From the sequence record OR532817.1: a stretch of 64,000 nt of DNA; one strand, written 5' to 3'. The translations under genes and the position numbers were made by a program. The notes beneath the pieces were generated by a model. The model did no database searches. It saw only the letters and a program-made list of their open reading frames with translations, and had not been told where the DNA came from. Below are positions 4,211-28,003 of this stretch, piece by piece; the stretch's first letter is position 1; the number at the start of each line of letters is the position of its first letter.

Positions 4211-5155
4211 ATGCCAACAATCACATTAACAGTTGGACTTCCCGGATGTGGCAAGACTACATGGGCTGTTGAAGAAGTTCGAAGATCTAAAAGTAAAACA
4301 GTAAACATCAACCGTGATGATATGCGAGAAAGCATGGCTGGTTCTCATGAGAATTATAAGTTCAAAGATGATAATGAGAAGTACATAGACGCTATGCAAA
4401 TTGCAGCAGCAGATACAGCAGCAAAGAATAAGTGGAATATTATTATTTCAGATACCAACCTAAAGTTATCTATCCGAAAGAAATGGAAAGATTGGGCTAA
4501 AGCCAATGGCTATGATTACAAAGAAAAGAATTTCTTTGATGACTTTGTAGCAAAAAGTACTTCAGGTGCAGATGTTCATCAGTACTTTAAAATTAAAGAA
4601 TTTGTTAAACAATGCAAATACTATAATTTACTTCGATATAAATCAGTACCGGAATCGGTAATTGATACAATGGCAGATTCTTATTTGTATAGTACTATGC
4701 CAGTTCCTTCTATTCAGAAAGATTCGATGTACGATTTTAGTACTGAATATATCATTGTTGATATTGATGGTACTTTAGCACATAGGGGAAATCGCAACCC
4801 ATATGATGAAAGTACTGTACTGGAAGATACACCAGATCTTGAAGTTATTCGTTCAGTACTTGCTGAAGTGAACCATCATAAACGAAAGGTTATTATCATG
4901 AGTGGTCGTCATGAAACTTGTGCAAAAGACACTCGTTTGTGGCTTCATGAAAATGGAGTTCCATTTGAATATCTTTTTATGCGTTCAGAAAATGACAATC
5001 GTCCTGATGATGTTGTAAAATATGAATTGTACATGAAACATGTTGCACCGTATTACAATGTTGTTAAAGTTTATGACGACCGCCAACAAGTGTGCACGAT
5101 GTGGCGTAAATTATTGAAATTGAAAGTTTTTCAAGTTGATGTTGGAAATTTTTGA
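4211..5155 (+). CDS. pseT: polynucleotide 5'-kinase / 3'-phosphatase (T4 PseT-like)
   Basis: N-terminal P-loop GLPGCGKT plus RDDMR; C-terminal HAD DIDGT, SGR, DDRQQV. Confidence 0.93.
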   Translation: MPTITLTVGLPGCGKTTWAVEEVRRSKSKTVNINRDDMRESMAGSHENYKFKDDNEKYIDAMQIAAADTAAKNKWNIIISDTNLKLSIRKKWKDWAKANGYDYKEKNFFDDFVAKSTSGADVHQYFKIKEFVKQCKYYNLLRYKSVPESVIDTMADSYLYSTMPVPSIQKDSMYDFSTEYIIVDIDGTLAHRGNRNPYDESTVLEDTPDLEVIRSVLAEVNHHKRKVIIMSGRHETCAKDTRLWLHENGVPFEYLFMRSENDNRPDDVVKYELYMKHVAPYYNVVKVYDDRQQVCTMWRKLLKLKVFQVDVGNF

Positions 5156-18780: not shown

Positions 18781-19377
18781 ATGTTTATTGTACTAAAAGA
18801 ATTTTTATATAATACATTAATTGCTTTTTCACTTATTTTCCCATCACATGATATTCAACAGAATGTAACTGTAAACGATAGTAACGTATTAATTTTTAAT
18901 ACGAAAATAAACGACGAATCAGTACAAAGAGCGGAAACATTATATAAGAAATATAAGTACAAAACCATTTCTATTACCTCACCTGGAGGTGATGTGAATT
19001 CTAGTTTTGAATTAGCAGTCTTTGCTTCTGACCATAATATTAAAGTTCATGTACCACAGTACTGTGCCAGTGCATGTACAGTTATATTTTTTGCCGCTGA
19101 TAAACAAAACAGGGTTATGGATAAAGATGCTATTATCGCTATTCATAATGTTTCGGTTGTGGCTAATAATGATATTTCTGGTAATGAAACCATATCTATC
19201 AATACTGCCATGGATTTAATGAAAGATACATCAGAAATCGTAGCATCTATGTATAGTTTATATGCATATGTTGGTATTCCAGGTGAAATCCTGATGAGAA
19301 CAAGCACTATGCACGGAGCTGATTCTTATCAAATAACAAAAAAACAACTCCAAATGTGGGGCATTTTAGAAAAATAA
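18781..19377 (+). CDS. secreted or membrane ClpP/crotonase-fold protease-like protein
   Basis: hydrophobic N-terminus; ITSPGGDV, CASACT, IAIHN. Confidence 0.65.
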   Translation: MFIVLKEFLYNTLIAFSLIFPSHDIQQNVTVNDSNVLIFNTKINDESVQRAETLYKKYKYKTISITSPGGDVNSSFELAVFASDHNIKVHVPQYCASACTVIFFAADKQNRVMDKDAIIAIHNVSVVANNDISGNETISINTAMDLMKDTSEIVASMYSLYAYVGIPGEILMRTSTMHGADSYQITKKQLQMWGILEK

Positions 19378-19380
19378 ATC

Positions 19381-19408
19381 TGTACAAGAATATCATTTGT
19401 GATATAAT
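19381..19408 (+). promoter_or_regulatory. sigma70-like promoter for the NAD genes
   Basis: extended -10 TG-a-TATAAT, with TGTACA 16 nt upstream. Confidence 0.55.
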
Positions 19409-19464
19409 AATTAAACAGGGAGTGATGTAGCTCTCTTTTATATAGCTTAGGGAGTACTAAGACA

Positions 19465-20529
19465 ATGAAAGAAAAAGTTTATGTATATATTGGACGTTTC
19501 CAAATTCCACATATTGGTCATGAAGAAGTCCTCAAACATGCAATCAAAATTGCAGATCGTGTTATCATTCAGGTCGGTTCAAGTGAACTGGCTCGTGATC
19601 CAAAAAACCCATTCACGTTTGAAGAACGTAAGTCAGTACTAGAAGAAATTACAAAACGTGTAGCTCAAGATGAATGGAATAAAGGTCGAACTGTTAAAAT
19701 CGATATTATGCCATTACATGATTATGTATATGATAATAATGCATGGCTAAAAGAAGTACAGGATAATGTTAAAACATGTACTTCAAGTAATGATATTACT
19801 ATTACCGGTTGTCGTAAAAATGGTGATACCAGTACTGAATATCTTAACTATTTTCCTCAATGGAAAAATGACTTCATTAACGAAGTACAAAGTAATGCAA
19901 AGGGTACTATTAGTAGTACTGAACTACGCGAAGCTTTTTTTGTCTCTGGTAAAGTTCCAACTGAATTTGTTTCAAAAGAAACAGCAGAATTTCTAGAAAA
20001 TTTTGTCAGTACTAAACCAGATGTATTCGATAATCTTATTAAAGAATATGAATTCATTAATCGTTATATTGAACAAATGAAAGAAGCACTACCTTATGAT
20101 ATTCCATTTTTAACAGCAGATAACATCGTCGTCAGTTGTGGTCACGTTCTTCTTATTCGTAGAAGAACATATCCAGGAAAAGGATTATTAGCTATGCCGG
20201 GTGGATATTTTCAATGTTGGGATGATAAAGACCAGATTGATACTGCAATTCGTGAATTAAAAGAAGAAACTAAAATCGATGTACCTGAAAAAGTACTTCG
20301 TGGTAATATTGTTAGTGCAACAGACTTTACTGACATGAATAGAAGTCTTCGTTGGCGAATTCTAACTAAAGCTGTTCATATTCAATTACCTGACGTCACT
20401 CTACCTAAAGTTAAAGGAAGTGATGATGCAGAAAAAGCTCAGTGGATTCCACTAAGCGATGTAGAAAAATATCGTGATCAGTTCTTTGAGGACCATTATT
20501 CTATTTTGGCTTCAGTACTGAAACTATAA
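19465..20529 (+). CDS. nadM: bifunctional NMN adenylyltransferase / Nudix hydrolase (NadM-Nudix, NatV-like)
   Basis: GRFQIPHIGH (HxGH), ISSTELR; Nudix box GG...AIRELKEET; GSDDAEKAQW. Confidence 0.93.
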   Translation: MKEKVYVYIGRFQIPHIGHEEVLKHAIKIADRVIIQVGSSELARDPKNPFTFEERKSVLEEITKRVAQDEWNKGRTVKIDIMPLHDYVYDNNAWLKEVQDNVKTCTSSNDITITGCRKNGDTSTEYLNYFPQWKNDFINEVQSNAKGTISSTELREAFFVSGKVPTEFVSKETAEFLENFVSTKPDVFDNLIKEYEFINRYIEQMKEALPYDIPFLTADNIVVSCGHVLLIRRRTYPGKGLLAMPGGYFQCWDDKDQIDTAIRELKEETKIDVPEKVLRGNIVSATDFTDMNRSLRWRILTKAVHIQLPDVTLPKVKGSDDAEKAQWIPLSDVEKYRDQFFEDHYSILASVLKL

Positions 20530-20604
20530 AGAATTATTACACAGAGTAATAATAAATCAGAGAACGTAGTAGTTCTCTAACTTAAACTAAGGGAGTCTTA
20601 GAAA

Positions 20605-22077
20605 ATGAAAAACGTAAATCCAAATGTAAACTTTATTCTAAATGCCGATTCATATAAAGTTGGTCATCGCAAAATGCTTCGCAAACATGTTGATGGTTAT
20701 TACAGTACTATTGTACCTCGTAAAAGCTCTCCACATAGCAACCATGTAGTTGTGGCTGGTTTGCAATACACAATTAATACCTATATCAATATTCAGATTA
20801 CCAAAGAAGATGTTGATGAAGCTGAAATTGAAATTCGTGAACAAGGTTCACGTTTTGACCGCACTATTTGGGACAAAATCGTCAATGAGTTTGGTGGTAA
20901 AGTTCCAGTAAAAATTAGTGCTATTAAAGAAGGTACAGTTGTTCCAGTTCAATCAGTAGTTTGTGTTGTTGAAGCTAAAGATGAGTTTGCATTTTTGGCT
21001 AGTTATATTGAAACTTGTATTCAACGTGGTGTATGGTATAGCAGTACTGTAGCATCTGAATGTCGTGCAATGAAAAAAATTCTTGCTGATGTAATGCAAC
21101 GTCATGCTGGTCATAAGAATGTAGATTATCATTTCCACAACTTTGGAGATCGTAGTGCAACTTGTTTTGAACATGCATATGTAGCTGGTATGGCACATGC
21201 AATTATGTTCAATGGTTCGGATAGTTTAACTTCCAATCGTTATATTAAAGCTCACTATAATACTACCAAAGCGTATCTGAGTTCAGTTGACGCTACTGAA
21301 CATAGCGTTATGTGCAGTAATAGTGATGCTGAACATCGCAATGATTATGGTGCAGCAGTAATGGCGGTAGATCATTGGGAAGAACAAGTTACAATGTGGG
21401 AAGAAGATGGATTAGGTGTACCAGTAACTTCATGTGTTATTGATACTTATAATGATTATCGCTTTGTCCGTGACTTTATCGGTACTAAATTAAAAGACCG
21501 TATTGTTGAAATTGGCAAACGAGGTGGTCGCTTTGTTCTTCGTCCTGATTCACGAATTCCCAAAGAAATTTGTATTGATGTAATCGAAATTCTAATGGAA
21601 AAGTTTGGTTATACTATTAACGAACATGGTTACAAAGTACTACCACCATATATTGGAGTAATTCAAGGTGATGGTGTTAATTTCGATAGTATTCATGAAA
21701 TTCTAGATATTCTTGATGAAAAGAAATTATCCCTTGAAAACATTGTATTTGGTTGTGGTACCAAATTGGTTAACCCTGAACGTGGTCGTGATCTTTATAG
21801 TTGGTCAATGAAAGGTACTGCACAACATGTCGAAGATGAACGTGAATGGCAAGACCTATTCAAAGATCCAGCAGGTGAACCAGGCAAACGTTCACATAAA
21901 GGGCGTGTAGTAACCTGGAAATGTAAAGTATCTGGTAAGATTTTTGTTGATCGTGATGATCTTGATAAAGTTAATCATTTCATTGAAAATCTACTTGTAC
22001 CAATGTATGACTGCGGTAAAATTATGAATTTCAGTACTTTTGATGAAGTTCGTGAGCGTGCTAACGTAGGTATCTAA
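20605..22077 (+). CDS. nadV: nicotinamide phosphoribosyltransferase
   Basis: ADSYKVGH, FHNFGDRS, ATEHSVM, VIDTYN, LRPDS, IQGDGV, KDP...GKRSHKG. Confidence 0.93.
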   Translation: MKNVNPNVNFILNADSYKVGHRKMLRKHVDGYYSTIVPRKSSPHSNHVVVAGLQYTINTYINIQITKEDVDEAEIEIREQGSRFDRTIWDKIVNEFGGKVPVKISAIKEGTVVPVQSVVCVVEAKDEFAFLASYIETCIQRGVWYSSTVASECRAMKKILADVMQRHAGHKNVDYHFHNFGDRSATCFEHAYVAGMAHAIMFNGSDSLTSNRYIKAHYNTTKAYLSSVDATEHSVMCSNSDAEHRNDYGAAVMAVDHWEEQVTMWEEDGLGVPVTSCVIDTYNDYRFVRDFIGTKLKDRIVEIGKRGGRFVLRPDSRIPKEICIDVIEILMEKFGYTINEHGYKVLPPYIGVIQGDGVNFDSIHEILDILDEKKLSLENIVFGCGTKLVNPERGRDLYSWSMKGTAQHVEDEREWQDLFKDPAGEPGKRSHKGRVVTWKCKVSGKIFVDRDDLDKVNHFIENLLVPMYDCGKIMNFSTFDEVRERANVGI

Positions 22078-22085
22078 TATATTTT

Positions 22086-22115
22086 GGAGAGTCATTATGG
22101 CTCTCCATTCTTTTT
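22086..22115 (+). terminator. intrinsic terminator after nadV
   Basis: GGAGAGTCA-tta-TGGCTCTCC plus a T tract. Confidence 0.7.
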
Positions 22116-22140
22116 AATTAAAGTAATAAAGGTATATAAT

Positions 22141-22317
22141 GTGTTTATTGGTTTTAAAATAGTTATTGTCTTCTTTATATGGTTTATTACATATCAAATA
22201 ATTGAAGAAATCAGCACTAAATTCTCTTCAGATAATTTCTTAGTAGACGTTTGTTTATTATCCATTGCGGTACTGGGATTTTTGATCATACCAGTTATAT
22301 TTTCATATTTTATATGA
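22141..22317 (+). CDS. small membrane protein
   Basis: two hydrophobic segments; GTG start preferred because the track start (22084) lies in the terminator. Confidence 0.55.
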   Translation: MFIGFKIVIVFFIWFITYQIIEEISTKFSSDNFLVDVCLLSIAVLGFLIIPVIFSYFI

Positions 22318-22323
22318 AAAATG

Positions 22324-22352
22324 TTGACATTTTTTTCTTCATAAGATATAGT
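22324..22352 (+). promoter_or_regulatory. strong sigma70-like promoter
   Basis: TTGACA-17-TATAGT. Confidence 0.8.
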
Positions 22353-22385
22353 ATAGATATCAACAATTAACAACGGATATCAAAA

Positions 22386-22652
22386 ATGTTCCAACATCTT
22401 TTGGATTTTTTCTGTACTGTAAACATTGAAAAACAAGCTAAGTTCATTATTGCAGAACTGGTCTGGTTTTACTTAGGTGGCCTGGTAATTACAATGTGTG
22501 CATTTTTACATAGTGATATTAATCTTGGTATTTCCTATGCAAAAAGTGAGAATAAACCATCATTACTACTCAAGTTTATTAGATGTTTATTGTACTTAGC
22601 TTATATCTTATATATTGTTGGATTTTTTGGTGTATATTATGTAATTCATTAG
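22386..22652 (+). CDS. small membrane protein
   Basis: 88 aa with two hydrophobic helices. Confidence 0.75.
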   Translation: MFQHLLDFFCTVNIEKQAKFIIAELVWFYLGGLVITMCAFLHSDINLGISYAKSENKPSLLLKFIRCLLYLAYILYIVGFFGVYYVIH

Positions 22653-22662
22653 GAATCGATTG

Positions 22663-23400
22663 ATGATTAGTACTAAATTCATTAAAAAAGCTGGTGATAA
22701 AAGATTACTAATCATTTCTGGAAATGGATTGTCAATGGATAGTGGTTTTGATTTATATGATATTCCTGATAATTTTCAGATAAATGATGTATGTAATATT
22801 GCCAGTTTAGGTACAAAATATCACGTAGTACATTCTTATTATAATACTCTTAGAGTTAAATTAAAAGATATTGAACCAAACGAAATGCATTACTATATTA
22901 AATCATTACAAGATGAGTATGGTGATAACTTTTTACACATGACCAGTAATGTAGATGATTTATATACAAGAATTGGTGGCACTGAATTAAAATTGCATGG
23001 TAATATTAAAGAGGTTATAGAAAACTACACCGCTGATGGTTCTGAAATAGAAATAAAAGAATTAGGTTATGAACCATATATTCCATGTAGTGGTATTTTT
23101 TCTAAACCCGGTGTTACATTAATTGGTGAGTTCCATAGTTATTTTTATGGATATAAAACCCCAATTTATGAAGAACGAAATGAAATACTAAAATCATTAA
23201 ATGAAAATGATACTGTAGTAGTAATTGGAAGTTCTGATTCAGTACTGAAATGGAGCCATTTAATAAATGATAAATGTTACACAGTACTAATCAATATAAG
23301 AAAAAATGAAAACGATCATCGTTTCAATGAACGAATTTATAAATCTTGTTCCAAATCTGTATTAGATTTATCTGGAATAATTTCAAAAAGGATGGTATAG
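22663..23400 (+). CDS. Sir2/sirtuin-family protein (divergent)
   Basis: SGNGLSMDSG (GAGxS-like), TSNVDD (TQNVD-like), LHGN (catalytic His), KPGVTLIGE, VIGSS. Confidence 0.8.
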   Translation: MISTKFIKKAGDKRLLIISGNGLSMDSGFDLYDIPDNFQINDVCNIASLGTKYHVVHSYYNTLRVKLKDIEPNEMHYYIKSLQDEYGDNFLHMTSNVDDLYTRIGGTELKLHGNIKEVIENYTADGSEIEIKELGYEPYIPCSGIFSKPGVTLIGEFHSYFYGYKTPIYEERNEILKSLNENDTVVVIGSSDSVLKWSHLINDKCYTVLINIRKNENDHRFNERIYKSCSKSVLDLSGIISKRMV

Positions 23401-23954
23401 TGGAAAAAATTGATTTCGGTAAAAGAAGTACCAGAGCCGATTTTGCTTTTTGTTGGATTTTTGCCAGAGATTGTACTCCATACTCTGGATATGATGATCA
23501 ACTTGGAATTGATAAAGTAAATTTAGTACTAGCACAATTACGTTTTGATGGTTGCATTGGGGCGTGTGGTGGTATGGTGGAAAGTGATGATAAATCATTA
23601 GAAGAAGCTGTACAGCGTGAAGTACTGGAAGAAATTGGTTATACTGTTGATTTAACACATTTAAAACCACTTCTAAGCTTGCGTTTACCATCAGGCAGCC
23701 ATTGCCATAGCTATAGTTATGAAGTTGATTACAATGAATTACAAAGCATTAGAGATGGTGCTTATAGAGGAATACATTTCAATCCAGAATGTGCTGGTGT
23801 GAATCTTTTACATATTTCAAGATATACAAAAGGTTATGGAAATGAATGTGGATATAATGTATTATTAGAACAACACTGGAGTGGTACATCAAAAGAAGAA
23901 TTTGTGTACCTTGTAGAGAAAGAAAATCTATTAATTAGTTATTTGAAGGAATGA
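23400..23954 (+). CDS. Nudix hydrolase of the NUDT16 (U8 snoRNA-decapping) type
   Basis: LAQLRFDGCIGACGGMVESDDKSLEEAVQREVLEEIG; GTG start overlaps the Sir2 stop. Confidence 0.85.
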   Translation: MEKIDFGKRSTRADFAFCWIFARDCTPYSGYDDQLGIDKVNLVLAQLRFDGCIGACGGMVESDDKSLEEAVQREVLEEIGYTVDLTHLKPLLSLRLPSGSHCHSYSYEVDYNELQSIRDGAYRGIHFNPECAGVNLLHISRYTKGYGNECGYNVLLEQHWSGTSKEEFVYLVEKENLLISYLKE

Positions 23955-24286
23955 TAATGGGATACCAGTTATTTTTAGATGATATTCGTGACCCATCAAA
24001 ATATTATAGTACTGAAATGGTACTATGTAGATCTTATGATGAAGCTGTCAAATATGTAGAAGAACATGGAATTCCAGAATTTATCAGTTTTGACCATGAC
24101 CTTGGAGATACTTCTGATAATGAAAAAACTGGTTATTCATTTGCTAAATTTTTGATTGATTATATGATTGATAATGGTATCAGTACTGAATTCAAATATA
24201 ATATTCATAGCTCAAATCCAGTAGGTGCAGATAATATCGATTCTTATCTAAAAGCTGGTTTTAAATATCTAAGAGAAAATATGTAA
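23951..24286 (+). CDS. cyclic-phosphate-processing receiver (cREC) domain protein
   Basis: LFLDDIRDP, ISFDHDLG, TGYSFAKFL, IHSSNPVG. Confidence 0.75.
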   Translation: MIMGYQLFLDDIRDPSKYYSTEMVLCRSYDEAVKYVEEHGIPEFISFDHDLGDTSDNEKTGYSFAKFLIDYMIDNGISTEFKYNIHSSNPVGADNIDSYLKAGFKYLRENM

Positions 24287-24609
24287 TGAATATTAGTAAT
24301 CATATTTTTGCATGTTTTATTAGTATATGCATATGTTCTGTTGTTGGTGGATTGTGGTATAATTCAATGAGGTACGAAAAACACAATATTAGATATAATT
24401 CAGTTAAAGTTGTTGGTATTGGTCAATGTTCTAATAAAAGAAAAAGTTCGAGTGCCGAGTGTGCTTTTTGGTACAAAGATGGAAATTCTACACAATTTGC
24501 AATTTCAGATAATCCAGTTTCAATTGGTCAAATTGTTTATCAAATGTGCTGGACAGAAAAGGCTCGTGGTGATAGATGTTATGTAAATTACCAAACGAGT
24601 AAGCAGTAA
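24286..24609 (+). CDS. membrane-anchored Cys-containing hypothetical protein
   Basis: N-terminal TM helix; periplasmic-type domain with four Cys. Confidence 0.75.
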   Translation: MNISNHIFACFISICICSVVGGLWYNSMRYEKHNIRYNSVKVVGIGQCSNKRKSSSAECAFWYKDGNSTQFAISDNPVSIGQIVYQMCWTEKARGDRCYVNYQTSKQ

Positions 24610-24631
24610 AAAAAGTTGTATTTTAGCAGTT

Positions 24632-24639
24632 CTAAATAC
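24632..24639 (+). promoter_or_regulatory. putative late-type promoter CTAAATAC
   Basis: same motif precedes RBP genes at 53872 and 56936. Confidence 0.45.
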
Positions 24640-24685
24640 ATATGAGAGTCTAAAGATACTCTCCCCTAACAAATAAGGATATTTT

Positions 24686-26131
24686 ATGTCGAATTATCTA
24701 CTAGACACAAACATTGTTTTGGCAGACCCACAGTCAGTTGTTGCATTTGATGGACATACTGTAATTATTCCATTCACAGTACTACAAGAACTGGATAATA
24801 TCAAATCAAAAACACTTGATATTTCTAAAGATGCCAGAGTAGCAATTCGTTTAGTTGAAAGTATTATTAAAGATTCTTCATATGAAGATATTAGTATTAA
24901 TGGTGTTGATTTAACAAAGACCCATCGTTTTCTTAGTCCAGGTAGTAAACTACGTATTGTCACAGAAGAACAAGTAAATAAACTAATTCATGATAAGGAA
25001 CTTGAGTTAGATTATAAATCCCTGATCGAAAGTACTGTACCGGATGATAAGATTATTCTTTCCGCAGCAGCAACTGATTCAGTTTTGGTTAGCCGTGATA
25101 TCAACGCCCGCCTGAAGGCTATGAGTTTTGGTATTGAAGTGCAAGATTACCGCCACGATAAGGTAATCGACGATACCGATTACATGCATAATGGGTCTCA
25201 TGAATTAGATTTTGATTTCTGGAAAACCTTAGAAACAATTGATGGAATTGATATCACAAGTAATCAGGAAGGCAAGCGTTTATATCATTATATTCCAGTA
25301 CTACAAATCGAACACCTAATGCCAGAAAATCTATATCCAGGTGATTACATCTATGACAACGATGAAGGTGATGTATTATTTGTATATCATGGTATTGCAG
25401 ATCGTGAAATGCAGGACGGTAGTACTGAAGGAGTTGCTTATTATAAATTTGAAGATATTGGCAAATCCAAAGCAATGAAACTAAAAGCATGGGACATTAA
25501 GCCTAAGAATCTTCATCAGGCAATGTGTATGCAAGCACTAATGGATAATGAAGTAGAATTGGTAATTATTCTTGGTCCAGCAGGGTCTGGTAAAACTCTT
25601 CTAACTACAGCATGTGCATTAGAACAAACAATGGAAAAACCAGCATACAACCAAATTGTATATACTCGTTCACAGGAAGATTTGGGGCGTGATACTGGAT
25701 TTTTACCTGGTAATTTGCATGACAAACTAGCTCCGTGGTGTGGTGCAATTTTTGATAGTTTAGATTACTTACACAAAGACGATAAAGATCCGAAAGGAAG
25801 TATTGAATATATTTTCGAAAAACAACTTATTACTCTACAAAGTCTAAACTATGTTCGCGGGCGTTCTTACCAAAGTACTTTTTTGATTTGTGATGAGTAT
25901 CAAGATCTGACTGCACATATGAGCAAGTCTTTGACTACTCGTATTGCACAGACTTCAAAGAAAGTTGCATTGGGGAACCTCAAACAACAAGACTCAAAAT
26001 ATCTAACAGCAAATAGTAGTGGTCTAACATATTTGGTTGAAATTATGAAACATTATTCTAACTGTCGAATTATTCAGTTAGAGGGTGTACAACGCGGTGG
26101 GCTGGCTGAGTACGCAGAAGAAAATATGTAA
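24686..26131 (+). CDS. phoH: PhoH-family ATPase with an N-terminal PIN domain
   Basis: LDTNIVL...VLQELD...PDDKII (PIN); GPAGSGKT, GFLPG, YVRGRS, ICDEYQD, LGNLKQQD. Confidence 0.93.
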   Translation: MSNYLLDTNIVLADPQSVVAFDGHTVIIPFTVLQELDNIKSKTLDISKDARVAIRLVESIIKDSSYEDISINGVDLTKTHRFLSPGSKLRIVTEEQVNKLIHDKELELDYKSLIESTVPDDKIILSAAATDSVLVSRDINARLKAMSFGIEVQDYRHDKVIDDTDYMHNGSHELDFDFWKTLETIDGIDITSNQEGKRLYHYIPVLQIEHLMPENLYPGDYIYDNDEGDVLFVYHGIADREMQDGSTEGVAYYKFEDIGKSKAMKLKAWDIKPKNLHQAMCMQALMDNEVELVIILGPAGSGKTLLTTACALEQTMEKPAYNQIVYTRSQEDLGRDTGFLPGNLHDKLAPWCGAIFDSLDYLHKDDKDPKGSIEYIFEKQLITLQSLNYVRGRSYQSTFLICDEYQDLTAHMSKSLTTRIAQTSKKVALGNLKQQDSKYLTANSSGLTYLVEIMKHYSNCRIIQLEGVQRGGLAEYAEENM

Positions 26132-26136
26132 TACCA

Positions 26137-26172
26137 AAAAATGGTAGTACTGGTTAAAGTACTACCATTTTT
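26137..26172. terminator. intrinsic terminator
   Basis: ATGGTAGTACT-ggttaa-AGTACTACCAT with A and T flanks. Confidence 0.8.
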
Positions 26173-26205
26173 ATATAAAGGGATTTTTTATATAAAGGGA
26201 TTTTT

Positions 26206-27525
26206 ATGAAAGTATCAATGTTATATTACATAGATCCAAAAATAAAAGAAGTAATCGAATTATCAAAAACGAATAATGCATTAGAAATAACAAAAAGAAT
26301 ATTTCGAGATAAGTATAGTCATTGGTTAGATGTAGATAATTTGGATTTTAAAAATTTACTACAAGATGAATTTTGTATTGACAATATAATTGGATATACA
26401 AGACACCCAACAAGAAATAAAATGTATTTCAAGTTATGTGATATATGCTCTAAAAACATTGAAATGAATGGGCTTGGAATATATTTGTTTTCTAAAAAAG
26501 ATATCAAGAGTGGCGTTAAGTGCTGTAATTGTTCAAAATCAACAAAATACACACATTATCAAAATATTATCAGATTTAATAAAATAGCATTACTTAATAA
26601 TTTAGAATTGTTAAATTACAATCACAGTTCTAAAATCATAACTTACATATGCAATAAAAACAACCATAAAATTGTACAATCATCTAAAGTTGATTATTTT
26701 TTAGTATTAAAACATTTTTGTAAAAAATGCATTTTTGAGAATAAATCAAAAACACACTCTGTTGATGATGAAATACACATAAAAGAATTCATGAGTACTG
26801 GTAATTTTCTAGAAGGAACTAAGTTCTGGCGTTCAGATAGAAGAACTACAAGTGGGTTATTAAATTTCTGGTATTATGAATGCCCCAAATGTTCATATGA
26901 TGAGTATGTACAAAATGGATTATGCGATGGTAAATTTGAAGTTAATATTGGTAATTTAAAATTAGGAAATCGTGCATGTAGATGTGAAAGTAGATACAGA
27001 TGGACACAGGATCAAAGAGAATACCAATTAAATAAAAACTTATCTTCAAGAAATATTACACAAAAATTTCTGTACTGGGATAATGGTTTTTATGAAAATG
27101 CATTTAGTTATGCATGGGTGGAGTGTTCTATACCTGAACATGAGAATTACAAAAGTACATGTGACAATCTTCTTAGGGGTAGAGGGTGTGGGCAGTGTCG
27201 TGGTCATTCACAGCGACAGTGTTACATTAATTTAGTACTTGACAATGATATTCCAATTGCGTTAAAATATGGCATTGCAGTTGAACATGAATCTAGAGTA
27301 CAAAATCAATGTAAAAAATCAATATATGATATAAAAAATTATGGTGTATGGGAATTTGATGGTGTATACTCATGCAAATCAGCAGAATCTGAGTGTAAGA
27401 GGACATTTACCAGAGTACTGGAAAAACGAGAAATGCAAGATGGCTTTACTGAAACCACCGAAGTTTTAAATCTAAATAAAATTATTGAGATTTATGAAAA
27501 TTGGGGTGGTATTCGTATAAAATAA
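26206..27525 (+). mobile_element. free-standing putative homing endonuclease (Cys-rich modules plus a GIY-YIG-like C-terminus)
   Basis: several CxxC motifs; C-terminal CYINLV...LKYGIA...R...Q...AESECK. Confidence 0.6.
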
Positions 27526-27547
27526 TATATTTGGGGATAACTCTATT

Positions 27548-28003
27548 TTGAAATCATTTAAATTATATAATTCAGAAAATACAAATGAATGGACATGGGT
27601 CATTGATGATAATGAATTCATTTATCTATTAGTTGAGATTTTTGGATTTATGAAAATGAAATACAATGGTGATGGTGATAAAACATTAGATACTTCATAC
27701 AGTTGGGTTGATGACCCAAATGAAGAAGAATATCCAGAAATTTATCAAGAATTATTGAATTTGTGGAAAAATGAACACCCACCAGAGAAAGAAAATTCAA
27801 TGCTTGAAATGCTAAATGAACGTTGTAATGATGATTCACCTGGAATTCCAGTACTCGGGGATACATTAGAACAAATCAAAGAATGCATGTCAGCGATGAT
27901 GGATTCAAGATATGGTGATAATGGATATCCACAAACATGGCAAGAATTTGAAGATTGGAAAATTAAAAATAATTGGAAATTTGAAAAAAATAGTGACAAA
28001 TGA
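27548..28003 (+). CDS. acidic hypothetical protein
   Basis: 151 aa, TTG start with a GGGG RBS. Confidence 0.7.
   Translation: MKSFKLYNSENTNEWTWVIDDNEFIYLLVEIFGFMKMKYNGDGDKTLDTSYSWVDDPNEEEYPEIYQELLNLWKNEHPPEKENSMLEMLNERCNDDSPGIPVLGDTLEQIKECMSAMMDSRYGDNGYPQTWQEFEDWKIKNNWKFEKNSDK

Follow-up and report, generated by a model that had tools for sequence, protein, structure and literature searches.

Introduction

The closest described relative of the locus considered here is a gene neighborhood of Serratia phage BF, in which Iyer, Burroughs, and Aravind (Viruses 2022, PMC9503650 section 3.7.3) place a sirtuin together with a 2H, a Nudix, a cREC, and a PIN protein and predict NAD+-dependent RNA repair. 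The cREC domain itself was delineated in a 2021 study of jumbo phages (PMC7824862), section 3.4.8 of which proposes that cREC and Nudix degrade cADPr-type signals. The description in section 3.7.3 does not place the Nudix in the NUDT16 family or the 2H in the Acb1 family and makes no mention of a conserved four-cysteine membrane protein, while PhoH is absent from the entire PMC9503650 text. No experimental work on cREC proteins, or on phage sirtuins from this clade, was found in the literature.

A functional analogue, not a homologue, is the Tpt1/KptA RNA 2'-phosphotransferase pathway with its Appr>p clean-up. With NAD+ as its substrate, Tpt1/KptA removes or caps phosphates on RNA and yields nicotinamide and ADP-ribose 1'',2''-cyclic phosphate. 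The latter calls for a cyclic phosphodiesterase as well as further hydrolysis, a scheme that fits a sirtuin/cREC/Nudix set (PMC8883491). Unlike that pathway, the phage module has no ART-fold enzyme, and sirtuin activity on phosphate acceptors is purely predicted. Also relevant is NARP2 (Nampt + Nmnat), a tested counter-defense that rebuilds NAD+ (10.1101/2024.02.11.579819).

The window analyzed is a 64,000-nucleotide stretch of Klebsiella phage RCIP0023 (OR532817.1), a RaK2-like jumbo phage to which it is 100% identical; RaK2, K64-1, and Muenster are 97.7–99% identical to it. Public runs containing RCIP0023 sequence are wastewater contigs. A first-pass annotation had read five of its genes as a candidate ADP-ribose-processing phage module that could be undescribed. 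In its general form, a phage module that acts on NAD+/ADP-ribose derivatives in conflict with its host, this idea is in line with what had been predicted in print, and the block does lie among NAD+/nucleotide counter-defense genes (NARP2, and an Acb1-like gene in relatives). The claim of novelty falls away, as section 3.7.3 of PMC9503650 presents this neighborhood for the same phage clade and PMC7824862 presents the cREC. The gene set itself holds up, and genome-based work of 2021–22 had predicted it to be an NAD+-dependent RNA-repair/ADP-ribose-processing system. RCIP0023 shares with the BF prototype the phage clade, gene order, sirtuin clade, Nudt16-like Nudix, cREC, PIN protein, and upstream NAD salvage. 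It differs in that Nudix and cREC are separate genes (fused in BF), an 88-aa membrane protein replaces the 2H (Acb1-like) gene, the sirtuin lacks its FR arginine, and PIN-PhoH is a divergent allele.

Gene layout and transcription unit

The features of the locus, in window coordinates, are as follows.

19465–20529, + strand: bifunctional NMN adenylyltransferase–Nudix (NMNAT-Nudix; NARP2 component, context); Pfam CTP_transf_like 2.6e-11, NUDIX 1.8e-10; same annotation in Muenster and BF
20605–22077, + strand: nicotinamide phosphoribosyltransferase NAMPT (NARP2 component, context); Pfam NAMPT_N 1.9e-14, NAPRTase 1.2e-23
22085–22107, + strand: intrinsic terminator 3' of NAMPT; 10-pair stem, 3-nt loop, T-run
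22141–22317, + strand: 58-aa 2-TM protein, GTG start, between terminator and promoter (context only); ORF, Muenster annotation with 2 TMDs
22324–22352, + strand: sigma-70-type promoter TTGACA-17-TATAGT; 11/12 consensus positions
22386–22652, + strand: 88-aa 2-TM protein (TM88), lineage-specific first operon gene; ORF
22663–23400, + strand: Zn-less phage-clade sirtuin with degenerate NAD-binding loop; SIR2 PF02146 4.8e-11
23400–23954, + strand: NUDT16-family Nudix hydrolase, GTG start, 184 aa; Nudt16-like PF22327 8.8e-16
23957–24286, + strand: cREC (cyclic-phosphate-processing receiver-like) protein, alternative ATG 23951; cREC_REC PF20274 5.1e-25
24286–24609, + strand: 107-aa 1-TM membrane-anchored protein (TM107), four invariant Cys; phrog_14661 4.3e-37
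24686–26131, + strand: PIN-PhoH, PhoH2-like RNA helicase/nuclease; PIN_4 3.6e-20, PhoH 3.2e-40

All five genes and domain identities of the first-pass annotation are borne out by ORFs and Pfam, and the operon lies, as it had stated, directly after the NAD salvage genes. Following the promoter, a 2-TM protein, Sir2, Nudix, cREC, and a 1-TM protein are tightly packed. Sir2 begins at ATG 22663, not TTG 22660, 10 nt after TM88, and the Nudix begins at its GTG, not at the start of a 202-aa mechanical ORF. The stop-to-start packing claimed from Sir2 onward is confirmed at the Sir2/Nudix (TAGTG) and cREC/TM107 (TAATG) junctions, each a 1-nt overlap. At the Nudix/cREC junction it depends on the start codon: 23951 gives an ATGA overlap, and 23957, which has the better Shine–Dalgarno spacing, leaves a 2-nt gap.

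The claimed promoter sequence is present, with TTGACA at 22324–22329 and TATAGT at 22347–22352. It is the top-scoring site within 19000–26500, an interval with no overall enrichment of promoter-like sites (32 found versus 43.7 expected). Muenster has the same hexamers and spacing, and so, despite a differing spacer sequence, does a metagenomic relative (L015) whose module proteins are only 74–83% identical to those of RCIP0023. The hairpin that closes the upstream NAMPT gene is the same in L015. On the + strand after 24609 there is no terminator-like site, so PIN-PhoH is probably co-transcribed as the last gene of the unit.

Conservation across phages

The block of Sir2, Nudt16-like Nudix, cREC, TM107, and PIN-PhoH occurs in 15/15 RaK2-like IMG/VR loci and also in BF, 121Q, Munch, Muenster, RaK2, and two metagenomic relatives. 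NAMPT/NARP2 lies upstream in 14 of the 15 loci, and an Acb1-like 2H enzyme lies beside the block in 13, where it occupies the slot that TM88 fills in RCIP0023. The 121Q module is adjacent to neither NAD salvage nor Acb1, and one metagenomic lineage keeps Nudix, cREC, and PIN-PhoH without an adjacent sirtuin. As the 15 full-block loci all come from a single clade of related jumbo phages, synteny by itself is weak evidence. The stop–start overlaps or very short gaps persist even in comparisons with saturated synonymous sites (dS 0.7–1.9).

The upstream membrane protein, which the first-pass annotation counted in the operon, is not a conserved member of it. TM88 has no significant Pfam match and no PHROG match, and its L015 copy is only 51% identical. 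The 58-aa 2-TM protein ahead of the promoter likewise has no family match; its L015 copy is 78% identical. NARP2 adjoins the module in the RCIP0023 window and Acb1 does so in relatives, but both are separate transcription units (terminator at 22085) and have no homology to module genes. The tested role of Acb1 is the cleavage of cyclic oligonucleotides, and its homologues were reportedly validated by experiment as counter-defenses by Hobbs and colleagues in 2022.

The module enzymes

By sequence and fold, the sirtuin is closest to E. coli CobB and SIRT5-type (class III) deacylases: its best PDB match is CobB (E 1e-13), and its AF2 model (pLDDT 89) reaches a TM of 0.74 to CobB/SIRT5/Sir2Af. Like these enzymes, it keeps the catalytic HG histidine, the NxD Asn and Asp, and the Rossmann core; Y60 and R64 are also invariant. 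Unlike them, it has none of the four Zn-binding cysteines (the CxxC pairs are absent), and the TQNxD Gln is S, A, or T. Both losses extend across the entire phage sirtuin clade, whose signature combines missing Zn cysteines, T[S/A/T]NVDD at the position of TQNxD, and a [D/E][V/I]CNI motif. In RCIP0023, the GAGxS loop, GAGLS in other sirtuins, reads GNGLS, the NAD loop is shortened, and the otherwise nearly invariant GIxxFR-loop Arg is lost, as it is in the closest relative; taken together, these changes suggest that NAD+ use may be weakened or changed. The first-pass description of a sirtuin with its catalytic His, an altered GxGxS loop, and no Zn tetrad is thus accurate. A dN/dS of 0.18 indicates purifying selection. 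The protein scores 61 bits against CobB equivalog cut-offs of 318, and none of the defense-type Sir2 models matched.

Xenopus X29 and human NUDT16 are U8 snoRNA decapping enzymes and hydrolyze IDP and ADP-ribose. The phage Nudix is a member of this family by Pfam, PDB sequence search, and fold. In phmmer, residues 42–177 match human NUDT16 chains in the PDB (E 2e-10). When the AF2 model (pLDDT 96) is compared with PDB folds, its top 39 matches are all NUDT16/X29/TIRR, with a TM of ~0.8 and ~25% identity across the full fold. The invariant residues are R48, E74, E77, E78, and E130; as in NUDT16/X29, they include the glutamates of the Nudix box and the Glu downstream of it (E130). Unlike NUDT16/X29, the protein comes from a phage operon and, in relatives, forms a fusion with cREC. 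Three alignments given in the first-pass annotation were reproduced by phmmer, while the end-to-end match that it claimed holds at the fold level only. Its label "eukaryote-type," with the implied transfer from eukaryotes, is not supported. The best tree sets the eukaryotic NUDT16 clade apart from the RaK2-like clade, and a sister placement of the two (AU p 0.078) is disfavored, though not formally rejected. The nearest relatives are metagenomic sequences, phage-borne where context is readable, and the family at large has hundreds of metagenomic members, whose contigs with readable context are phage-like.

The cREC protein has a REC-like fold, its Atlas neighbors are all cREC, and D10, D11, R13, S46, F47, D48, D50, H86, N89, and P90 are invariant. 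Nudix and cREC form a single polypeptide in BF and P0006 and, judged by coordinates, in GAP32, CBB, and Erwinia and Yersinia phages. The Sir2–cREC linkage recurs in unrelated rV5-like phages. One of these, Escherichia phage FFH2, carries a sirtuin with the same clade signature adjacent to cREC, along with a T4-type RNA ligase 1 (Rnl1), a P-loop kinase, and a metallophosphoesterase; its cluster thus holds an RNA ligase and end-healing enzymes instead of the Nudix and PIN-PhoH of RCIP0023. Unbiased neighbor clustering placed an RNA ligase (PF09414) and/or a kinase and phosphoesterase within 5 kb at 22 of 65 other cREC loci.

TM107 was found in 15/15 RaK2-like loci and is absent from two metagenomic ones (L008 and L010). 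Its cysteines C48, C59, C88, and C98 are invariant in an alignment with the 121Q, BF, Munch, and L015 homologues. PIN-PhoH follows the module in every relative. The first-pass five-gene operon omitted it, although it is more constant than any other downstream partner and directs attention to RNA. It resembles mycobacterial PhoH2, a PIN + PhoH RNA helicase/RNase, in its two-domain architecture and in its top NCBIfam match (RNA 5'-3' helicase PhoH2, 2.3e-41, under the cut-off); unlike that enzyme, the phage version reaches 142 bits against an equivalog cut-off of 680. RCIP0023 has a divergent allele, only 49% identical to RaK2 PhoH. Elsewhere, a T4 Pnkp homologue lies at 4373–5152 of the window, ~17.5 kb from the operon, and the RaK2 genome codes for an RNA ligase.

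Functional interpretation

The reading that we tentatively prefer, at a probability short of even, is that the locus is the RaK2-clade version of the Iyer–Burroughs–Aravind sirtuin module, which would spend NAD+ on phosphate-bearing RNA ends, then clear the ADP-ribose by-product, and serve in counter-defense. Counted in its favor are the 15/15 block, the Nudix–cREC fusion, the FFH2 linkage, and the 22/65 cREC loci; the PhoH2 match, the Pnkp homologue, and the RaK2 RNA ligase; a sirtuin that lies far under the CobB cut-offs and yet keeps its catalytic residues under purifying selection; and the prediction published in PMC9503650 (section 3.7.3) and PMC7824862. Several points weigh against it. 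The operon has no RNA ligase of its own, Pnkp is distant, and T4-type healing and sealing makes no 2'-phosphate, which leaves no evident need for a Tpt1-like step. The altered sirtuin loop may compromise NAD+ use, and one lineage carries the remaining enzymes minus an adjacent sirtuin. The window lacks the 2H of the published configuration, whose counterpart in relatives is an Acb1-family enzyme of the anti-CBASS type. By analogy with their tested homologues, NARP2 and Acb1 would act against NAD+ depletion and nucleotide signals rather than against RNA damage, and the four-cysteine TM107 is left without a role.

The main rival, a real but lesser prospect, builds on the proposal of the first-pass annotation. 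Here Nudix–cREC would destroy immune messengers derived from ADPR, such as the cyclic ADPR isomers of TIR/Thoeris, or cut back ADP-ribosyl marks that phage DNA, RNA, or protein has received. The sirtuin would then be an accessory enzyme or binder, and the module a third arm of a counter-signaling island beside NARP2 and Acb1. The NAMPT/NMNAT and Acb1-family genes directly upstream in most relatives speak for this, since homologues of both are experimentally validated counter-defenses (for NARP2, 10.1101/2024.02.11.579819), as does the early sigma-70-type promoter. By their PDB titles, some solved NUDT16 structures contain ADP-ribose or di-ADPR; the enzyme splits the pyrophosphate of conjugated ADP-ribose and removes protein-linked ADPR (PMC8883491); and cREC and Nudix have been proposed as cADPr-type signal degraders (PMC7824862 section 3.4.8). 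Erasure of marks or signals leaves PIN-PhoH and an NAD+-consuming sirtuin without a role, however, and in other phages cREC is linked with RNA ligase, kinase, and phosphoesterase, an association that speaks for RNA ends. A scan of module genes from the window, BF, Munch, and 121Q found no macro, ARH, or NADAR eraser domain, and the 121Q module stands apart from NAD salvage and Acb1.

Two further readings rest on what NUDT16 is known to do. It removes metabolite caps from RNA, and the phage enzyme might strip host or phage RNA of NAD, FAD, dpCoA, or ADP-ribose caps during host takeover, after which cREC and PIN-PhoH would process and degrade the RNA while the sirtuin supplies or regulates ADP-ribose-type caps. 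The decapping activity of the NUDT16/X29 family, an FAD complex among the PDB fold matches, and the PhoH2-like helicase/nuclease downstream are consistent with this, but the Nudix–cREC fusion and the need for a sirtuin go unexplained, and T4 NudE falls outside the NUDT16 family, which leaves decapping without a phage precedent within that family; we consider it unlikely. NUDT16 is also a (deoxy)inosine di/triphosphatase, has been crystallized with IMP (2XSQ title), and is cited by papers on ATP/ADP-deaminase defenses and toxins. Detoxification of ITP, IDP, and dITP from host adenosine-deaminase defenses (RADAR, Cad1-type), with the other genes as unrelated neighbors, would nevertheless explain neither the cREC fusion nor the constant linkage to sirtuin and PIN-PhoH and is the least probable of these accounts. 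Scarcely more probable is that the genes have no joint function and are neighbors through shared descent, each acting alone, for example a sirtuin deacylating host proteins. The single-clade origin of the full-block loci and the deacylase folds nearest the sirtuin would suit that account; the Nudix–cREC single protein in several genera, the Sir2–cREC adjacency in unrelated rV5-like phages, the junctions that persist at dS 0.7–1.9, and the clade-wide loss of the Zn module and TQNxD Gln argue against it.

For the preferred reading of NAD+-dependent RNA-end processing, we infer all substrates and reaction steps. Sirtuin chemistry, in which a nucleophile attacks C1' of NAD+ and a His-activated 2'-OH attack follows, parallels the two steps of Tpt1. 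The Zn-less, CobB-derived sirtuin would move ADP-ribose from NAD+ to an RNA terminal or 2'-phosphate, the Tpt1/KptA job, and release nicotinamide and ADP-ribose 1'',2''-cyclic phosphate. cREC would open cyclic phosphates, either on this product or on 2',3'-cyclic RNA ends, and the NUDT16-family Nudix would split the ADP-ribose pyrophosphate, free or RNA-attached, into AMP and phosphoribose. PIN-PhoH would unwind or trim the RNA, and the adjacent NAMPT/NMNAT would recycle the released nicotinamide to NAD+. Expressed early from a host-type promoter, such an operon may serve to keep phage and host RNA usable after cuts by host ribonuclease-type defenses.

Organization of the operon

Positions 22000-24700 of the window match Klebsiella phage RCIP0023 (OR532817.1) at 100% identity; for RaK2, K64-1, Muenster, and KP13-7, which are Alcyoneusvirus jumbo phages, the identity is 97.7-99%. 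The GC content of the window is ~30%, and every gene in the 19-27 kb interval is carried by the + strand. Gene starts were set from the curated starts of Muenster and Shine-Dalgarno spacing, giving the following features.

22085-22107, + strand: stem-loop terminator, 3' of NAMPT
22141-22317, + strand: 58-aa open reading frame with two transmembrane segments
22324-22352, + strand: predicted promoter TTGACA-17-TATAGT, 11/12 positions matched
22386-22652, + strand: TM88, 88-aa protein with two transmembrane segments
22663-23400, + strand: Sir2, single-domain sirtuin of 245 aa
23400-23954, + strand: Nudix, GTG start
23957-24286, + strand: cREC, alternative start at 23951
24286-24609, + strand: TM107, 107-aa protein with one transmembrane segment
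24686-26131, + strand: PIN-PhoH

The sequence at 22324-22352 is the top promoter match within a 7.5-kb region in which promoter-like matches overall are not enriched (32 vs 43.7 expected). It is conserved in Muenster and in the metagenomic locus L015 despite a different spacer sequence, and the module proteins of L015 are 74-83% identical to those of the window. Two of the module junctions are 1-base overlaps, and the third is either an ATGA overlap or a 2-nt gap. The first-pass annotation had described a strong promoter ahead of a packed gene set, and this observation is accurate: the open reading frames, the promoter match, and the junction overlaps were reproduced, and the feature is real. 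No terminator-like site was found on the + strand 3' of 24609, so PIN-PhoH is probably part of the module transcript. A second promoter-like sequence inside PhoH, TTGACA-17-TAAAGT, is kept in six relatives and was set aside as conserved coding sequence. Public “RNA” runs containing the window sequence are wastewater assemblies (contigs), and close relatives are present in them, but they yielded no 5' ends or strand information.

Conservation and linkage of the block

RaK2, Muenster, L015, and the related phages BF, 121Q, and Munch all have the genes in the order Sir2, Nudix, cREC, TM107, PIN-PhoH. The cREC profile recovered 80 loci from IMG/VR, 15 RaK2-like and 65 others, and the complete block is present in 15/15 of the RaK2-like loci. 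The first-pass annotation had proposed gene-neighborhood co-occurrence as a check, and the genes do recur together, in these loci as in the cultured relatives. NAMPT lies upstream of the block in 14/15 loci. Directly 5' of Sir2, 13/15 carry a 148-aa gene of the Acb1 anti-CBASS family (PF23474, 1e-15 to 1e-16), a slot that in Alcyoneusvirus is occupied by TM88, which is unrelated to Acb1. Examples of the Acb1-family gene in this position are found in L003 (4507-4953), L005 (4395-4841), and L008 (4366-4815). A tblastn search of the 64-kb window with three Acb1-like 2H proteins found no homologue. Phage 121Q also has no Acb1-like gene near the module.

Nudix and cREC are fused in BF and in the homologous protein P0006, and by coordinates in GAP32, CBB, and Erwinia and Yersinia phages. 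The metagenomic lineage L008 has Acb1, Sir2, Nudix, cREC, and PIN-PhoH without TM107, and the metagenomic lineage L010 has Nudix, cREC, and PIN-PhoH without the sirtuin. A 248-aa protein upstream of Nudix in L010 was considered as a divergent sirtuin and ruled out (hhalign probability 0.1). In the rV5-like phage FFH2, a sirtuin of the same clade adjoins cREC, T4-type RNA ligase 1, a P-loop kinase, and a metallophosphoesterase.

Label-free clustering of the neighbors of the 65 non-RaK2 loci gave RNA ligase PF09414 (16 loci), metallophosphoesterase (16), and P-loop kinase (14) as the biggest partner families among those annotated. An RNA ligase and/or a kinase with a phosphoesterase stands beside cREC in a union of 22/65 loci, which are not 22 independent events because many are probably related. 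Ten large neighbor clusters scanned against Pfam contained no histidine kinase; many other clusters have no annotation. The best match of PIN-PhoH is the RNA helicase PhoH2, and RaK2 is reported to encode an RNA ligase. At 4373-5152, ~17.5 kb before the module, the window encodes a homologue of T4 Pnkp (PseT) that shares 97% identity with RaK2 pseT.

The Nudix protein belongs to the NUDT16 family

The Nudix protein matches the Pfam Nudt16-like family PF22327 at 58.7 bits (cut-off 27, E 8.8e-16). Human NUDT16 is its first match among PDB sequences (phmmer, E 2e-10), followed by X29 and TIRR, whereas ordinary MutT and ADPRase proteins have E above 0.01. Three alignment stretches with NUDT16 that the first-pass annotation had given reappear in the phmmer alignment with the human protein. 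An AlphaFold (AF2) model built on 42 homologues (pLDDT 96.1) returns NUDT16, X29, or TIRR at each of Foldseek PDB ranks 1-39, with TMq of 0.69-0.80, and the next family, CoA pyrophosphatase, follows after a clear drop to 0.57. The HMM and structure search that had been proposed against NUDT16 confirms both the PF22327 family and the NUDT16-type fold.

The RExxEExG Nudix-box residues and the downstream acidic residue are retained in the window protein. In the 42-sequence alignment, which includes eukaryotic members, E74, E77, E78, and E130 never vary, and R73 almost never. TIRR is a catalytically dead paralogue of NUDT16; unlike TIRR, the phage protein keeps the catalytic Nudix residues. Profile and predicted fold firmly place it as a NUDT16-family enzyme and, by family, a candidate decapping, IDP, or ADP-ribose hydrolase. 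T4 NudE, in turn, hits the generic NUDIX model but not PF22327, and the family HMM misses it. A T4-NudE-like identity was therefore ruled out, T4 NudE being outside the Nudt16-like family. Aeromonas-phage proteins labelled “NudE” are Nudt16-like.

Outside animals, the Nudt16-like family is architecturally diverse. Distant Nudt16-like domains are fused to a 200-aa N-terminal extension, an HD_4 domain, and ankyrin repeats (L012 5001-6143; L013 5001-6092; homologous protein P0122), with HD and PTP-NADK-like genes as neighbors. More distant Nudt16-like genes occur in unrelated gene contexts.

Family membership is a separate matter from origin, and the first-pass annotation had called the protein eukaryote-type. 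A word-index protein search and a first IMG/VR scan gave near-identical relatives only, and an exhaustive profile search was needed. This search, of 1.84 billion representative proteins, yielded 366 relatives, almost all metagenomic, and many metagenomic members outscore true eukaryotic NUDT16 proteins, one of which, P0138, matches X29 at 1e-42. The nearest relatives of the window protein are metagenomic, and the nearest one with a readable contig is in a phage-like context. The ESM Atlas holds Nudt16-like clusters from viruses, bacteria, and animals.

A quick 148-row tree set the eukaryotes apart, but the AU test indicated that its search was too shallow, and it was replaced by a careful 72-row maximum-likelihood tree. 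There, the RaK2-like Nudix proteins form a clade (support 99/98), and the eukaryotic clade (100/99) lies inside a starred 23-row set that contains no RaK2-like row. Forcing the RaK2-like and eukaryotic clades to be sisters costs 30.5 log-likelihood units (AU p 0.078), and in the shallower 148-row tree the forced grouping was also not rejected by the AU test. The sister grouping is disfavored, though not formally rejected. A one-residue insertion in the Nudix box was considered as a synapomorphy of the window protein and NUDT16, and was dropped because it varies within both groups. From the profile, tree, and AU results, the family assignment is therefore firm and a eukaryotic origin of the phage Nudix is not supported. 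Nor is the term eukaryote-type supported for a protein whose clade falls outside the eukaryote-holding set and whose relatives are mostly metagenomic.

A remodelled sirtuin

The sirtuin matches PF02146 at 43.4 bits (cut-off 24). CobB, Sir2Af, and SIRT5 lead both its sequence and its fold matches (Foldseek TM 0.67-0.75), and the Rossmann-plus-small-domain fold is present in the model. The catalytic H112 and the N-x-D residues N96, D98, and D99 are invariant. The cofactor loop, GAGxSxxSGIPxFR, is not matched: the window protein reads GNGLSMDSGFDLYD, and the loop is shortened. Conservation of the Arg column of this loop is at least 90% among relatives; the window sirtuin and the homologous protein P0162 are the only ones to have lost the residue. 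The combination of GNGLS, a shorter loop, and loss of the GIxxFR Arg is found in the window sirtuin and its nearest relative alone. The window protein contains no CxxC pairs of the Zn-binding four-Cys module. These results agree with the first-pass annotation on all three of its points, the retained catalytic His, the altered GxGxS loop, and the missing Zn tetrad.

Alignments with 28 relatives delineate a distinct sirtuin clade common to RaK2-like and rV5-like phages. All of its aligned members (26 RaK2-like sequences and that of rV5-like FFH2) lack the Zn cysteines, which the bacterial homologue P0199 retains. The clade is further marked by replacement of the TQNxD Gln with S, A, or T and by a [D/E][V/I]CNI motif; its invariant residues are Y60, R64, N96, D98, D99, and H112. 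The best NCBIfam score, 61.6 bits to the CobB equivalog, is far below the cut-off of 318. PADLOC gave no match at E 0.01 or better to defense-type Sir2 (ThsA, DSR1/2, SIR2-HerA), and no HerA or SLOG neighbor accompanies the gene. The gene is under purifying selection, with a dN/dS of 0.18 vs 0.17 for Nudix and 0.10 for cREC. Sirtuin homologues are found in 971 phage records (~970 sequenced phages).

cREC and the membrane proteins

Against PF20274, cREC scores 88.4 bits (cut-off 27, E 5e-25), and its family is present in at least 148 phages. Its ESM Atlas neighbors are all cREC, and a cluster model, which is that of a neighbor and not of the window protein, superposes on response-regulator receivers (TM 0.6-0.67). 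Seven diverse members share the invariant acidic, receiver-type residues D10, D11, D48, and D50, together with R13, H86, N89, and P90. Matches to adenovirus hexon (E ~0.01) were dismissed as chance.

TM107 is a member of phrog_14661, with an N-terminal anchor and four invariant cysteines. The core of this family reads GQC...PVSIGQxVYQxCW...RCYV, and every cultured RaK2-like phage shows translational coupling of TM107 to cREC. The Lys/Ser-rich linker of TM107 carries an in-frame 6-nt deletion, at window position 24436, in a close relative from one public run (X16); the 121Q, BF, and Munch homologues have a shorter version of this segment or lack it. TM88 has no family match and is poorly conserved.

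Allele turnover and mobile sites

The window PIN-PhoH shares just 49% identity with its RaK2 and Muenster counterparts, though the genes just upstream are 97-99% identical (DNA). RaK2 PhoH is closer to the proteins of other genera (121Q 80%, Munch 71%, BF 67%). DNA similarity to other Alcyoneusviruses fades out within ~110 nt of the PhoH start and is still missing at 27,600; the last weak match (78%) ends at ~24,800. The swapped block (24686-27600) is common only to OU509535. At the sequence level, this looks like xenologous replacement at a fixed slot. Directly 3' of the swapped PhoH, a 439-aa Cys-rich open reading frame (26206-27525) contains a pair of CapR homology domains (PF21817, 2.6e-11). 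This gene, possibly mobile and related to homing endonucleases, could explain the replacement of the PhoH allele.

The site between NMNAT and NAMPT (20529-20605) is empty in the window. Muenster has an EDxHD homing endonuclease there (L001 3522-4529), RaK2 an HNH endonuclease (L017 16227-17252), and a metagenomic relative a DUF723 gene (L015 3755-4660). Since the occupants differ or are absent between phages, this spacer is a polymorphic homing site. Divergence from L015 across 19465-26131 is strongly mosaic along these 7 kb. Synonymous divergence is 0.15 for NAMPT, 0.32 for NMNAT, ~0.7 for Sir2 and Nudix, 1.9 for cREC, and 2.1 for PhoH, a pattern that points to recombination breakpoints inside the island.

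Relation to the described system

The first-pass annotation had suggested an undescribed system. The module belongs to a type of system for which genome-based descriptions exist, in section 3.7.3 of Iyer et al. 2022 (PMC9503650) and, for cREC, in a 2021 jumbo-phage survey (PMC7824862). The survey defined cREC and predicted that it opens cyclic phosphates on ADPR derivatives or RNA ends. Section 3.7.3 of Iyer et al. proposes a KptA-like action of the sirtuin toward RNA 2'-phosphates and leaves ADPr>P to the other enzymes. The window has the four non-2H components of configuration 1 of their sirtuin-centered phage “RNA repair” neighborhood, tightly packed and in BF order. It differs in missing the 2H phosphoesterase, which is present as an Acb1-like 2H in 13/15 relatives. 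With a degenerate NAD loop in its sirtuin and no 2H gene, the window represents a reduced or modified form of the module of its clade. A literature search found no experimental papers on cREC or phage sirtuins. New here are the placement of Nudix in the NUDT16 family with a fold-level test, not as T4-NudE-like; the identification of the “2H” partner of the relatives as Acb1-family; the signature of the sirtuin clade and the additional decay that it shows in Alcyoneusvirus; the conserved membrane partner with four cysteines; and the quantification of synteny.

Possible functions of the module

That the module genes work together is well supported by the Nudix-cREC fusion, the recurrent linkage, and the tight packing, which makes it improbable that they have no joint function at all. 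A role in host-phage conflict is likely because of the early host-type promoter, the neighbors with tested counter-defense homologues, and the allele turnover. The chemistry performed is what we infer from these enzymes. Our tentative first choice, held at somewhat less than even confidence, is NAD+-dependent processing of RNA ends and ADPR-phosphates. No other reading draws on all four enzymes together with the rV5-like and RNA-ligase linkages. Erasure of ADPR signals or marks is the less likely rival, favored by the neighboring Acb1 and by the neighboring NARP2, the NAMPT and NMNAT pair that overcomes NAD+-depleting defenses (10.1101/2024.02.11.579819). RNA decapping, quite unlikely, and sanitation of inosine nucleotides, the least probable of the readings, leave part of this enzyme set or its linkages unused.

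We regard two bolder proposals as rather unlikely, and equally so. Nudix-cREC and the remodelled sirtuin could constitute a new anti-defense enzyme class, or the Zn-less sirtuin could ADP-ribosylate nucleic-acid phosphates and so replace Tpt1. To our knowledge, such transfer to nucleic-acid phosphates has never been shown for sirtuins. As an anti-defense class, the enzymes would target ADPR-derived messengers and by-products, such as the cyclic ADPR isomers of TIR/Thoeris and ADPR cyclic phosphates. They would then form the third arm of a counter-signaling island, beside NAD+ rebuilding by NARP2 and cyclic-oligonucleotide cleavage by Acb1.

The RaK2-type operon is the most compact site joining a sirtuin and cREC with the well-understood NUDT16 family and an RNA helicase/nuclease, and the module adjoins two pathways with proven counter-defense roles. 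The labels “NAD-dependent deacetylase” and “NudE” are probably wrong for these genes. At stake are the action of sirtuins on nucleic-acid phosphates, the role of cREC, and the choice between RNA repair and signal degradation as counter-defense. Because RaK2-like phages are used against Klebsiella, their counter-defense repertoire helps predict host range.
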